Assembly (NCBI GenBank): GCA_965240325.2
Contig: OZ251244.1
Location: 868,001 to 932,000 of the forward strand
Source of the DNA: Rebecca billardiae RCC1528
Taxonomy: Eukaryota > Protista > Haptophyta
Reading direction: 5' to 3'
DNA: 64,000 nucleotides
In this document: positions 43,412 to 48,033 of the stretch, piece by piece
How the letters are laid out: every line of letters begins with the position of its first letter
Numbering within the stretch: position 1 is the first letter of the stretch
Position numbers and translations under genes: made by a program
Notes under the pieces: generated by a model
Told to the model about the DNA's origin: nothing
The model's database searches: none
What the model saw: the letters and a program-made list of their open reading frames with translations, nothing else

Positions 43412-43412
43412 T

Positions 43413-43470
<58 letters not shown>

Positions 43471-46400
43471 AGAGAGAGACGAGAGAGAGAGAGTCTAGCA
43501 GATCGTCACGCCTCATCACGAGACGACCGCCGGTCCGCCGCCGAGACGACCTGCTGCTGCGGGAGCCCATGGGGTGCGCGTGCCTTGCTGCTCCACGAGG
43601 GTGAGCGCAAGGCGAATGAGCTCCGCCAGGATGGGCTCGAGAGCCGCGACGGGCCTCGGAACCGAGGCTGCGCAGCGGGGAGGTCGAGTGTGGGCTCAGA
43701 TCGTCATCCCGGGCCCCATCCGCGGGGCCGTCCAGTTGCTCCTCGCCCAGGCAGAACGCGCGCATCACGTGGGTCTCGCCGTGATCGAACACCTCCGCGG
43801 GCCAGATGCGTTCGGCGTCTTCGAGGAGTGCCTCGGACAAGGGCAGCGTATCCCCGCCCATGAGCAGCGCGCCGTACATCTTGAGCATCACGGGCTTGAG
43901 GCGGCGCTTGTCACACGGGATCGTGAGCCCGTTCACCATGTGGTTTCGTTCGCAGCAGGTGAAGCGCCCTGCGCACGGCGGTGGCGGGGCGAGCCGCGCG
44001 AGAGCGCGCAGCGCCGGGCGGACCACGCGTCTCAGCGTGCGCACCGCGCACCCGGCGCGAGTCGCGCGCGCGCTCGCGCTCGCAGAGGCGCACCTTCAAA
44101 GGGGTAGAGCATGTTGCTCAGCTCGTTCGCCTCCTGGGCCGACGGCTCGGTCGTGAGGCGCGGCTTTCGCTGTGGCTGCTCGCGTATCGCGCCGTCCGCG
44201 CTTAGGCCCGCCTCCAACCTGGCGGCCGAGGGCAGCCGCGTGTTGAAGCTGATGCGGCCAGGCGCGTGCCGGCCGTGCCGCCGCTCCGTATGCGGCGAAG
44301 GGTCGTTGCTCCGCCTCCCTCCGTGCGAGGGGAGGGGCGGCGTGGCGCTCGTCGTTGGCGTCACCTGTGCGCACTGCCGCACATCGGCCCTCGACGGCGC
44401 GCGAGCGAGGGTGGTGGGCGGCAGGGCAGACGAGGCCGTCATGCGCGCGAGCATGCCGGAGTGTCCGAAGAAGAGCGACTCTGCAAGGCTCATCAGCGGC
44501 GGTGCCGCCCCCTCCTCCTCCTCCTCATCGTCCCCCTTCGCCACCGCGGCCGCGAAGGGCACGAGCAGGCCCCCGCGCTGAAGCAACCGCTCGTCCGCCA
44601 GGTAGATCGACTCGGCGCCGCGGATCAGCTTGGAGAAGACCTCGCACCGGCACCAGCCTCGGCTCGCGTACGACTGGAGGCCGCAGGGCTCAGCCGTGTC
44701 AACGTGTGTCGCCTCGGGCGCGAGGATGATCATGCTGTGCGCCATCTGCGAGTAGTAGGGCAGCGAGGAGATCGCCGCCTGCTGCATCTCCGAGCTCGCC
44801 TGCGGGATGGAGCACAGGTCGATCCACACGTACAGCTCGTCGCTCGGGCCGAGCGAGAGCACGTCGCCCGCGCCGACGGTCGCCCCCACGCTATTGGCGA
44901 GCGGGAGCTCGCCTTGCCTGTGCAACTCGAGGAGCGCGTCGAGTGCGGCGATGAGCGTGCGGTACTGCTCGCCCCGCGGGTCCGGGTGCTCCCAGCCCAC
45001 CCACCTGCGAGCGAGCGAGATACGGGAGCGAGAGAGGGGCGGCGCGCGTGCCGAGCCGTGGCCGGCGGTGCGGTGAGCACGCGCGCGTGGCCGCTGGCGT
45101 GGCTGCGCGCGGCTCGCCGGGCCGGGCGCAGCGGCCAGCGACGCACTGGTGGCTGATGAAGCAGATGTGCCGGGTGAGGGCGAAGTGGAAGGCGACGGCG
45201 GGCGTGTCGAGGAACGTGAGCAGGCCGGACTCGCGGAGATGCTCGTGCGTGCGCAGCTCGCCCAGCTTGCGCAGCTTGCTGAGCGAGATGAGCACCATCG
45301 GGTACTTGAACGTGAGCTCGATCGAGAGCAACTGCTTGCACGCGTCGAGCTGCGAGACACGCATCAGGCGCCGCTCCTCCTCGATGGCGCTCCTGCGCGC
45401 GATCATCTCGCTCGCGTGATGACAGAGCGCGAGCTGGGTCACGATCGTCGCGAGCGAGATGGTGAGGAGCAGGCTCGGGCCGAGCTGCCAGGCGCCCGCT
45501 CTTGCCGAGGCGTCGCCCTGCCCGCCCGCAGCATCTGCATCGGCATGCGCGTCGCGGATGAATTGCGTGCCAAGCACGGACGAGTAGTGGAAGGCCATCA
45601 CGATCAACGCGCCCACCATCGACACGCCGACGCGCACGTCGAAGCGGTCGAGCTGCTTGCCGGCGGAAGGGTGCAGTGAGACGACCGAGACGACCGACGC
45701 GCCCACGATGAGCAACGCGGTGGACAGGGCGACAATCAGCGGGTCGTGCTCCATCCTGAACTGGCCTGAGAGGCCCTGCATGCCGCCGTAGTGCATCGTG
45801 GCGGCGGTGAACACGATGGTGCCTGCCTGCATGGCGAGCCAGGCTACCCTCGCGCGGGCAGACGTCTTCGCGGTGGAGGGCACGGACGCCTGGAGCGCCT
45901 GCGAGAGCTTGTCCGACGCCGCGGCCGTGACTCCGCTGCCGTTGTGGATCGGCGGTGTGAGCTGATCGCCGTGCGGGCGACGGGGGTCCACCGCCGCGGA
46001 CGTGCGGGTCGGCCGGACGGACGCGGGCGAGACCGATTGCATCGCGCCGGAGACGAGCATGCTGATCACGAGAAAGCCACCGACGCACGCAACCACGAGC
46101 GAGCCCAGCGTCCAGCGCGGCTCGAAGCCGACCGGCACAGCGTTGCCCTCGCAGTCGTACAGCAGCATGGCGTCCATGCCCACAAAGTGGGCGACCCACA
46201 CGGCGCACATGCCCAGCGAGATGGCCGCGGAGAGCATGAAGACGTGGCTCCAGCGCCTGAGCCTCGCGCTGACGGCCATCTCGGCCAAAAATTGCAGCGG
46301 GTACGCCCGCGCGGTGGCGAGCGCCCGCGCCGCGGCCCTGCGCGCGGTCAGGACCTGCACGAGTGCCGTGAGCCCGGCGTACGCGCCGGCGGCGGAGGCG

Positions 46401-46480
46401 ACGAAGCTGAGGATCACGATCGGCGCGTCCCACTGTCGCGACAGCACGCAGCTTGATCCGTCGGACACGACGTCGTGCAT
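43412..46480 (-). CDS. MHYT membrane sensor fused to a cytoplasmic HET/TIR-like domain; exons 46480-45147, 45004-44094, 43968-(43412; 3' end uncertain)
   Basis: WDAPIVILSFVAS..AY; AVWVAHFVGM; MHYGGM; FHYSSV. Then YPMV..FISHQW..HPDP..Q..VWIDLCSIPQ..AISSLPYY..RGWCRCE and FEGRFTCC..H..PCDK. Both splices restore conserved motifs. Confidence 0.8.
43418..43492. repeat. (GA)n microsatellite
   Basis: Read directly from the sequence. Confidence 0.92.
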
Positions 46481-46930: not shown

Positions 46931-48033
46931 GGTCGCCGATCCAGCGGAGCGGAGTGGCTTCCGCCTTCCGGCGCCTGAACTTCACCTACAGTACAGATTT
47001 TTGGAGCGGAGCGGCCGCGCGGGGCCGCCGCCGCTGTGGCGGGCCGCTTGGGGCGTGCACGGCGTGGGCTCGTGCGGCCGCTGCTGCGCACGCCGAGCGA
47101 TCTGGCGCGGTCTCGCGGCTTGTCGATGGCCTCGCGCGCCGCAGCGCGCCGCGCGCCTTGCCTAGCTTCGCCTGTCTCGCGCCTCGGCCGCCGTGCACGC
47201 GTGCGCCGCCAAACCGCAAGCTCGGCATACCTCTCAGCCGAGCGTGCACGTGCCTTGCGCGACGCGACGCGGGCATTGCCGCCGGGCGATGTAGGCGCAG
47301 TGTGAGCACGCACCGTGAAGCCTCGGCGCGGATCGAGAACAATGAAATGATGCCGCGTGCGTGCGTGGACCGTCTGTGCGTTGAGCAGTGCAGAAAGCTT
47401 GACGACTGACTCTCTTGCCGGGGCGATCGTCACGTCGCATCGTCACGCAAGGCCCGCCCGCACATCATAGTGGCGTATGTCTTCATGACTACAACGCTCG
47501 ACTAGTCTTCAAGAGTTGCAGCGTCGCGATAGCCCTTCGTTCAACGGAGGCCCGTGATGTCCATTGGCGGTTGGTGCCGTCAGCAGTTGTCGACAGCTGA
47601 CCGAGACGTTGAAGACACTCTCGATCCGCGCCGAGGCTTCACGGTGCTCGCTCACACTACGCCTACATCGCCCGGCGGCGGCAATGCCCGCGTCGCGTCG
47701 CGCAAGGCACGTGCACGCTCGGCTGAGAGGTATGCCGAGCTTGCGGTTTGGCGGCGCACGCGTGCACGGCGGCCGAGGCGCGAGACAGGCGAAGCTAGGC
47801 AAGGCGCGCGGCGCGCTGTGGCGCGCGAGGCCATCGACAAGCCGCGAGACCGCGCCAGATCGCTCGGCGTGCGCAGCAGCGGCCGCACGAGCCCACGCCG
47901 TGCACGCCCCAGCGGCCCGCCACAGCCGCGGCGGCCCCGCGCGGCCGCTCCGCTCCAAAAATCTGTAGGTGAAGTTCCGGCGCCGGACTGGTTCCGCAGT
48001 GGAGTTGAGAGTCGGCGACCCTGACCACCCTTG
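46931..48033. mobile_element. Foldback/MITE-like element, copy 2 (same family as 23431-24510), left terminus truncated
   Basis: Arms ~46931-47338 and 47619-48033 with a spacer homologous to copy 1. Intact right end GGCGACCCTGACCACCCTTG; about 13 terminal bases and the TSD are missing on the left. Confidence 0.9.

Follow-up and report, generated by a model that had tools for sequence, protein, structure and literature searches.

Introduction

Bacterial MHYT one-component sensors, such as CoxC (MHYT-LytTR), NbdA and MucR (MHYT-GGDEF-EAL) and the MHYT histidine kinases, consist of a module of seven transmembrane (TM) helices directly joined to a cytoplasmic output, with the MHYT motifs located at the outer membrane face. 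CoxC, the one MHYT protein with an experimental characterisation, responds to CO via its MHYT domain and requires copper for this response (PMC11347149). The partner domains listed for MHYT are kinases, GGDEF/EAL, PAS and DNA-binding domains, but neither HET nor TIR (PMC11347149). Here, a gene of the haptophyte Rebecca billardiae RCC1528 (GenBank assembly GCA_965240325.2, contig OZ251244.1) is described, which very probably encodes an MHYT sensor fused to a HET-like domain. It is located in a stretch of 64,000 nucleotides (positions 868,001 to 932,000 of the forward strand), referred to as the window; coordinates given without a contig name are counted from its first letter. The MHYT plus HET-like architecture, together with its parallel to a fusion of H-NOX with the same output, is the new element. 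No paper mentioning MHYT together with a HET domain was found in the literature searched, and none describing H-NOX plus HET-like proteins.

In fungi, HET is one of the most common modules of cell death and immunity. Expression of fungal HET induces cell death, while activity and structure of the domain are listed as not determined in a review from 2025 (PMC12881547). A similarity between HET and TIR detected by HHpred has been published, and HET homologues were noted in Haptophyceae in the same study (PMC4986451). Work on TIR genes of Gephyrocapsa huxleyi used TIR Pfam models only (PMC12489294).

Results

Gene structure and colinear relatives

The MHYT and the HET-like halves are almost certainly parts of a single protein encoded by one spliced nuclear gene, as judged from the exon structure and from relatives in which the same parts are joined. 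According to open reading frames (ORFs) and sequence, the gene is located on the minus strand from 46480 to at least 43757 and comprises three exons separated by two short GT-AG introns, none of the exons containing a stop or frameshift. The predicted product is membrane-bound and has a length of roughly 850-930 residues. The window is part of contig C27 of an assembly of 41 contigs and 72 Mb and has a GC content of 58-84% in 2-kb bins. Separate exon pieces or natural uninterrupted relatives were used as queries in the sequence searches.

Exon 1 (45147..46480) starts with the ATG at 46480, in agreement with the N-terminus of the ortholog P0147 described below, and comprises 444 codons plus two bases. 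It ends with HICFISH-Q, the last bases 'ca' being located at 45148-45147 and the donor GTGCGT at 45146. Intron 1 (45005..45146; 142 nt, GTGCGT...CGCAG, phase 2) splits the Gln codon of SHQ|W; its acceptor AG is found at 45006-45005 and is followed by 'g tgg gtg ggc tgg gag cac ccg gac ccg'. Excision rebuilds CAG (Gln) and the protein reads on as FISHQ-WVGWEHPDP, so that the FISHQ|W splice implied by an earlier sequence-only reading of the locus is borne out by an intron in frame. Exon 2 extends from 45004 to 44094, with W..PDP from 45003 on, and ends with NMLYPFE plus 'g'. Intron 2 (43969..44093; 125 nt, GTGCGC..GCAG, phase 1), assigned from the sequence, is followed by exon 3, which opens with 'gg cgc ttc acc tgc tgc' (G-RFTCCERNH). 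The conserved C-terminal domain part in exon 3 (43757..43968; RFTCCERNH..CDKRRLKPVMLKMYG...IWPAEVF...RAFC) matches the family profile with an E-value of 8.2e-08 and is 77% identical to the corresponding part of the paralog L002. The frame of exon 3 is open to a stop at 43412-43414 and runs through a CT microsatellite ((CT)n, 43412-43480), read as SLSLSL at the frame end; the stop at this place is therefore a tentative one, and a further intron may be present.

An exhaustive profile search revealed P0147, an 849-residue protein of another organism encoded by one uninterrupted ORF. The corresponding contig (JGI) is gene-sized (2,611 nt), with 36 nt on the 5' and 25 nt on the 3' side of the ORF. 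P0147 is colinear with the window protein from the start codon to the tail (32% identity, E 8e-51 for exon 1; 33%, E 2e-46 for exon 2) and is recognized by the MHYT model of Pfam (E 5e-11). It shares the start, the seven helices, an unbroken FVSHQW, a similarly long and similarly placed low-complexity insert and the CC..H..C tail, which by inspection matches exon 3 (CFDGAFSCCDRGH...CDK...IWPASVF). Whether or not this contig represents a transcript, both halves are thus present in one frame in a different organism. Including the window gene, three MHYT plus HET-like loci were found in the genome, the others being L002 on contig C5 (G000:C5:1318593-1322084) and a locus on contig C31. L002 has the same order of parts and a core with 72% identity; between L002 and the window gene, the exon-like stretches and both splice sites are conserved, while the interior of intron 1 is diverged and contains a 7-nt indel. 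Word-index protein searches returned only the window ORF on a Logan contig (P0002) and one EukProt protein. A metagenome scan for further MHYT fusions matched 100 patterns, none of which was confirmed, and a feature search of a protein atlas with P0147 gave no usable match.

Relatives without the introns read the same motifs unbroken, showing that the proposed junctions recreate the family motifs exactly. At the site of intron 1, IFISHQW.SW..PDP is unbroken in the paralogs L004, L006 and L012, as is FISHQW in the EukProt transcript protein P0001. At the site of intron 2, LLVFEG..TCC..H is contiguous in L004, L005 and L006, and VFEG/TCC is contiguous in P0147 as well.

Some features are peculiar to L002: an additional insertion resembling an intron, located in the linker (QFH|VRAHARS...AHQ|ACQHLL), an intron 1 which is by chance in frame, and two copies of an SN(D/E)PSP..GRR motif in the disordered insert. 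About 500 bp upstream of the start codon of the window gene, a near-perfect inverted repeat is located (46992-47338 and 47619-47967), the arms of which are ~350 nt long, 95-100% complementary and ~280 nt apart. Long mirror-image ORFs on both strands near 46992-47967 are a by-product of this repeat.

Putative membrane-bound sensor module

Exon 1 matches the Pfam MHYT family (PF03707) in three tandem stretches with 48.8 bits (cut-off 21; E 7.1e-13), and a six-frame scan of the genome for MHYT also flagged C27:913686-914207. The sensor with its seven TM helices (45410..46435, residues ~16-357) was delimited with Pfam and with an AlphaFold2 (AF2) model of exon 1 (mc55f3de0e85d) built on nine algal sequences, in which the TM helices reach pLDDT values above 90 (pTM 0.73). 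Pfam and model thus agree with the sequence-only reading, in which three MHYT-like repeats in a multi-TM region had been noticed. In the model, TM2, TM4 and TM6 each end C-terminally in one of the three motifs, which are thereby placed on one membrane face, the outer one. The chain is predicted to begin outside the cell, to cross the membrane seven times and to have a cytoplasmic C-terminus. A cytoplasmic loop between TM3 and TM4 (residues ~149-207) is disordered. The linker helix (45323..45409, residues ~358-386) is the cytoplasmic continuation of TM7; one unbroken helix (335-386) joins sensor and output in the AF2 model, in line with the short helical linker proposed earlier. Among solved structures, nothing similar to the exon 1 model beyond generic 7-TM bundles was found, and Foldseek gave no match in the PDB at E ≤ 0.001.

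Motif 1 (AHFVGM, 46175..46192, outer end of TM2) contains Ala in place of Met. Motif 2 (MHYGGM, 45779..45796, outer end of TM4) is canonical, and H230, Y231 and M234 are invariant among nine algal MHYT sequences. In motif 3 (FHYSSV, 45575..45592, outer end of TM6), the invariant His (H298) is kept and both Met positions are lost. Met-His-Tyr of each motif are the proposed copper ligands of MHYT; in the window protein, all three motifs contain His and Tyr/Phe, the leading Met is limited to motif 2, and a trailing Met is found in motif 1 as well as in motif 2. His is retained in all three motifs of L002 and P0147 as well; motif 3 of the latter reads LHNSSV. Compared to the bacterial MHYT sensors, the algal protein differs in its two Met-depleted motifs, the long disordered loop between TM3 and TM4, the eukaryotic host and the HET-like output, which is outside the listed partners (histidine kinase, GGDEF, EAL, PAS and DNA-binding domains).

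About 11 MHYT loci were found in the genome; for eight of them, the 10 kb of surrounding sequence contained no HET-like match. Among these eight, at least four have open frames of 354-413 residues which end soon after the seventh helix and contain three canonical M-H-F/Y-x-G-M motifs. Stand-alone MHYT proteins of ~350-410 residues, each with the three canonical motifs, are encoded by L032, L033, L034 and L036 (G000:C37:177k, C3:477k, C3:501k and C8:964k, respectively). An in-frame MGASAS, a possible N-myristoylation start, precedes the first helix in L033, L034 and L036. The loci C3:477k and C3:501k are nearly identical to each other and oppositely oriented.

Cytoplasmic output domain

The HET-like domain is distributed over all three exons. 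Its N-terminal part at the end of exon 1 (45147..45316; LTFKYPMVL...THEHLR...FLDT...HICFISHQ) aligns with the N-terminal block of the family (profile E 1.2e-14), and the conserved core is encoded by exon 2 (44572..45004; W..PDP, VWIDLCSIPQ, AISSLPYY, H..DT..C and RGWCRCE; profile E 4.1e-44). A low-complexity insert of ~150 residues with an acidic run and an SNDPSP..RR motif follows (44094..44571), ending with ...NMLYPFE-G. This disordered insert between the core and the CC..H..C tail is specific to the MHYT subfamily; it is present in P0147 and L002 and absent from compact paralogs. The series of motifs from FISHQW to RGWCRCE and the CC..H..C cluster (FTCCERNH...CDK), pointed out in the sequence-only reading, was found entirely on the minus strand, and its columns are invariant in a family of thousands. 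Together with the MHYT score of 48.8 bits, this shows that the motifs did not arise by chance.

A family profile built from paralogs of the genome matched 5,812 cluster representatives at E ≤ 1e-3 and 949 at E ≤ 1e-30 in a library of 1.8 billion proteins. By sequence, the HET-like domain is a member of a very large protist family not captured by Pfam. Invariant or nearly invariant in 112 diverse members are F, S-H-Q-W, P-D, W.D, Q, P, H, Y and R.W(C)R.E. The window protein keeps every family-invariant residue, including the Glu of W-x-x-x-E in RGWCRCE (44641..44643), which is present in 112 out of 112 members. Its codon was reported to be intact, and gag is indeed read exactly at 44643-44641.

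Fungal HET domains contain blocks resembling SY.WG, W.D..CI.Q and RGW..QE. The same block order is present in the window protein (FISHQW, VWIDLCSIPQ, RGWCRCE), F.SHQW corresponding to LSY.WG, VW.D..S.PQ to W.D..CI.Q and RGWCR.E to RGW..QE of the fungal domain (PF06985; HET-E, TOL, HET-6); the correspondence is based on Pfam matches over profile positions 4-93. Pfam HET matched 39 of 115 domain slices of the family at E ≤ 1 (best E 1.3e-5), while no other Pfam family was found in more than two of the 115; one member, P0006, reached E 8e-4 on its own over profile positions 4-93. Most algal members, that of the window included, stay below the Pfam cut-off. A six-frame genome scan with Pfam HET gave no match at the family loci, single intact paralog domains had no match in Pfam, and neither single sequences nor the profile had one in the PDB. 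The algal domain further differs from fungal HET by its position C-terminal to membrane sensors (fungal HET is N-terminal to NACHT-WD40 or free-standing), by its N-terminal extension and CC..H..C tail, and by its haptophyte-type protist hosts.

For the fold, the compact paralog L004 (246 residues) was modelled with an alignment of 115 sequences (pLDDT 93.8, pTM 0.91). Comparison of this model with predicted structures retrieved Haptophyta clusters belonging to the same family, together with one cluster of fungal HET. The latter (Ascomycota, ESM Atlas, 100% PF06985) was superimposed with TM-scores of 0.56/0.48 over 168 aligned residues (rmsd 3.6), both structures being predictions. From motifs and models, distant homology of the HET-like domain to fungal HET is probable. 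Foldseek of the L004 model against the PDB gave no match at E ≤ 0.001. The best TIR fold matches are enzymatic TIRs, and the TIR domains of MyD88, MAL and TIRAP are among the fold matches too. Three nucleotide-binding halves of fucosyltransferases score slightly higher (7.2-6.6) by covering the N-terminal extension as well. In the model, the HET-like domain appears to have an alpha/beta core of the type found in TIR domains and nucleoside 2'-deoxyribosyltransferases (NDT). The invariant Glu is found in helix 150-163, which follows the third core strand (124-128), four residues past the invariant Trp. From the order of secondary-structure elements, we take this to be the position at which enzymatic TIRs carry their catalytic Glu. 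In sequence, the invariant polar residues are placed where the core strands end or directly thereafter, and where the next helix begins.

With enzymatic TIRs (SARM1, AbTir, SPARTA TIR-APAZ, plant TNLs) and nucleoside 2'-deoxyribosyltransferases, the HET-like domain shares no significant sequence or profile similarity. It differs from both by extra N-terminal strands, a longer loop in front of the Glu helix and a larger number of invariant His, Asp and Gln residues. Besides the HET-like family, the genome encodes at least 10 canonical TIR_2 domains (PF13676) above the cut-off, among 14 loci listed, with tandem pairs at C5:1949k and C13:1545k. These do not belong to the HET-like family, and their invariant Glu is part of S..C(R).E.

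Other sensors joined to the HET-like domain

The median distance from the N-terminus to the start of the HET-like domain is 365 residues. In top family members, the N-terminal partners are leucine-rich repeats (LRR; P0004, P0006), an ANF/periplasmic-binding flytrap (P0046), a beta-helix (P0047) and a solute-binding domain (P0012); neighbours in the ESM Atlas add Ank, MORN, LRR_6 and TPR. H-NOX (PF07700) plus HET-like proteins form an 89-member Haptophyta cluster in the ESM Atlas. In the R. billardiae genome, an H-NOX match (C27:332360-332875, minus strand) and a HET-like match (C27:331400-331732, minus strand) are in the same frame within one open frame of 617 residues; going by coordinates, strand, frame and open-frame length, an apparent H-NOX plus HET-like fusion lies at this position. 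In total, 13 H-NOX loci and ~32 HET-like loci were found in the genome, three of the latter with MHYT and one with H-NOX.

The variety of sensors preceding the HET-like domain (LRR, flytrap, solute-binding, H-NOX) points to a general receptor output. The best argument for transmission of a small-molecule signal by this domain is the presence of two unrelated gas-sensor modules on the same output, H-NOX being soluble and heme-based, whereas MHYT is membrane-bound and of the copper type. The arrangement resembles Toll-like receptors in that an outward or intramembrane sensor is linked through the membrane to a module with a predicted TIR-type fold, and family relatives even carry LRR ectodomains. 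It differs in that the sensor of the algal protein is an intramembrane bundle of the metal/gas type rather than an ectodomain, and in that the output is HET-like.

Discussion

On balance, the locus is best explained by an MHYT receptor with a HET-like output which is switched by a ligand and is more likely a nucleotide-acting enzyme than an adaptor. In the proposed mechanism, the MHYT bundle would bind a membrane-soluble small ligand at a His-lined copper site near the outer face. By analogy with bacterial CoxC, this ligand would most likely be a diatomic gas (CO, NO or O2), a tentative assignment which stays somewhat short of an even chance. Ligand-induced movement would be transmitted by TM7 and its cytoplasmic helix of ~30 residues, and the HET-like domain would change its packing or oligomeric state. 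Thus switched, it might either convert NAD+ or a similar nucleotide as an enzyme or serve as an adaptor. The invariant polar residues, located at the usual ligand site of such folds, make an enzyme likelier than a passive adaptor; judged from sequence, the case for an enzymatic output is evenly poised, and NAD+ as the substrate to be cleaved is a rather doubtful choice.

Several results weigh against parts of this reading. Exon 2 of the window gene scored 12 bits (E 0.26) with Pfam HET, below the gathering score of 22.5 bits; as the domain is split over three exons, this score refers to the exon 2 piece scanned alone. The proposed relation to TIR was not recovered by sequence: aligning the family with nine TIR_2 domains of this genome by hhalign yielded a probability of 2%, Pfam TIR models were absent from the matches of the 115 members, PADLOC found nothing recurrent and a PDB profile search returned no match. 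Of the HET/TIR relation put forward in the sequence-only reading, the HET part is supported (39 of 115 members in Pfam, fold TM-score 0.56). With the direct tests for TIR homology having failed, the link to TIR rests on the fold and on the published HHpred similarity of HET and TIR. The statement supported by the models is that of a divergent HET-type domain with a predicted TIR/NDT-type fold. Substitutions affect the Met of motif 1 and both Met positions of motif 3 in the fused subfamily, whereas the stand-alone MHYT paralogs carry the canonical residues; the predicted copper site may thus be altered. The ratio of non-synonymous to synonymous substitutions (dN/dS) against the paralog was 0.29-0.95, a mild constraint by a crude measure, which is uninformative in such strongly GC-biased DNA. 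The one public contig with the same ORF (Logan ERR14847151, P0002) still contains the intron and is therefore uninformative on splicing.

The dN/dS values, which are not low, and the many long spurious ORFs which arise at high GC would fit a fusion that is an artefact of long open frames, the halves being separate genes or an unexpressed pseudogene. This is exceedingly unlikely in view of the colinear single-ORF ortholog P0147, the three such loci in the genome, and in-phase GT-AG junctions which exactly restore family-invariant motifs between exons free of stops and frameshifts; on the same evidence, two separate genes were rejected. Bacterial contamination was also rejected, as the gene has spliceosomal introns and eukaryotic paralogs. 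For the C-terminal half, the fucosyltransferase matches raise the possibility of an enzyme which depends on nucleotide sugars or other nucleotides and is of the Rossmann-like glycosyltransferase type, rather than of the TIR type. Their Z-scores differ from those of the TIR and deoxyribosyltransferase matches by less than 1, which is treated as a tie, and only half a GT-B fold is matched. A weak glycosyltransferase match in Pfam was seen in one of 115 members (E 0.12), whereas HET is the sole recurrent family and the fungal HET model is matched at a TM-score of 0.56, so that this assignment is very improbable.

Two further alternatives leave the fused receptor in place and deserve more weight. 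In one of them, the HET-like domain is a non-enzymatic adaptor, and ligand-driven homotypic oligomerisation recruits other HET-like or TIR proteins, as in the animal pair of TLR and MyD88. An adaptor role for HET was proposed by Dyrka et al. (PMC4986451), adaptor TIRs (MyD88, MAL, TIRAP) are among the fold matches, and the ~32 HET-like and at least 10 TIR_2 loci of the genome could provide partners. However, at least ten polar positions (S, H, Q, D, D, Q, H, R, R, E) are occupied by the same residue in 109-112 of the 112 diverse members compared, as is typical of active sites and not of interaction surfaces, and the best TIR matches are enzymatic ones; a pure adaptor is rather unlikely for these reasons. 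The other alternative concerns the MHYT half, which might have lost gas sensing and instead anchor the protein in the membrane, mediate dimerisation or respond to another lipid-soluble cue. Such a loss is suggested by AHF.GM and FHYSSV (LHNSSV in P0147) in place of the threefold MHF/Y.GM of stand-alone paralogs; in addition, the signal of NbdA is still called unknown in a preprint (bioRxiv 10.64898/2026.03.20.713172). Against such a loss, all three motifs of the window protein, L002 and P0147 keep their His, no canonical residue of motif 2 is missing, distant species share the bundle at 32% identity, and the same output is fused to H-NOX, another gas sensor. Loss of gas sensing appears doubtful, if somewhat less so than the adaptor. 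The reading as a ligand-switched MHYT receptor with a HET-like, possibly nucleotide-acting output is therefore preferred.

As the sensor belongs to a kind whose ligands in bacteria are known to be diatomic gases, recognised via copper, the function of a HET-like domain becomes testable with a defined stimulus. With H-NOX, LRR and flytrap sensors in sister genes, the domain is seen to be a general receptor output with a role beyond allorecognition. The known partners of MHYT, so far made up of kinases, c-di-GMP enzymes and DNA-binding domains, gain a further type, this time in a eukaryote. A broader generalisation, in which the HET-like domain of haptophyte-type algae is a universal receptor output making a nucleotide-derived signal in a TIR-like manner, with MHYT and H-NOX fusions as a eukaryotic pathway converting the levels of CO, NO or O2 directly into it, is speculative and at present unlikely. 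If true, this generalisation would provide the first defined ligand class, and hence the first handle, for the biochemistry of HET. The finding points to an unstudied route for the sensing of NO, CO or O2 which abundant marine algae may use.

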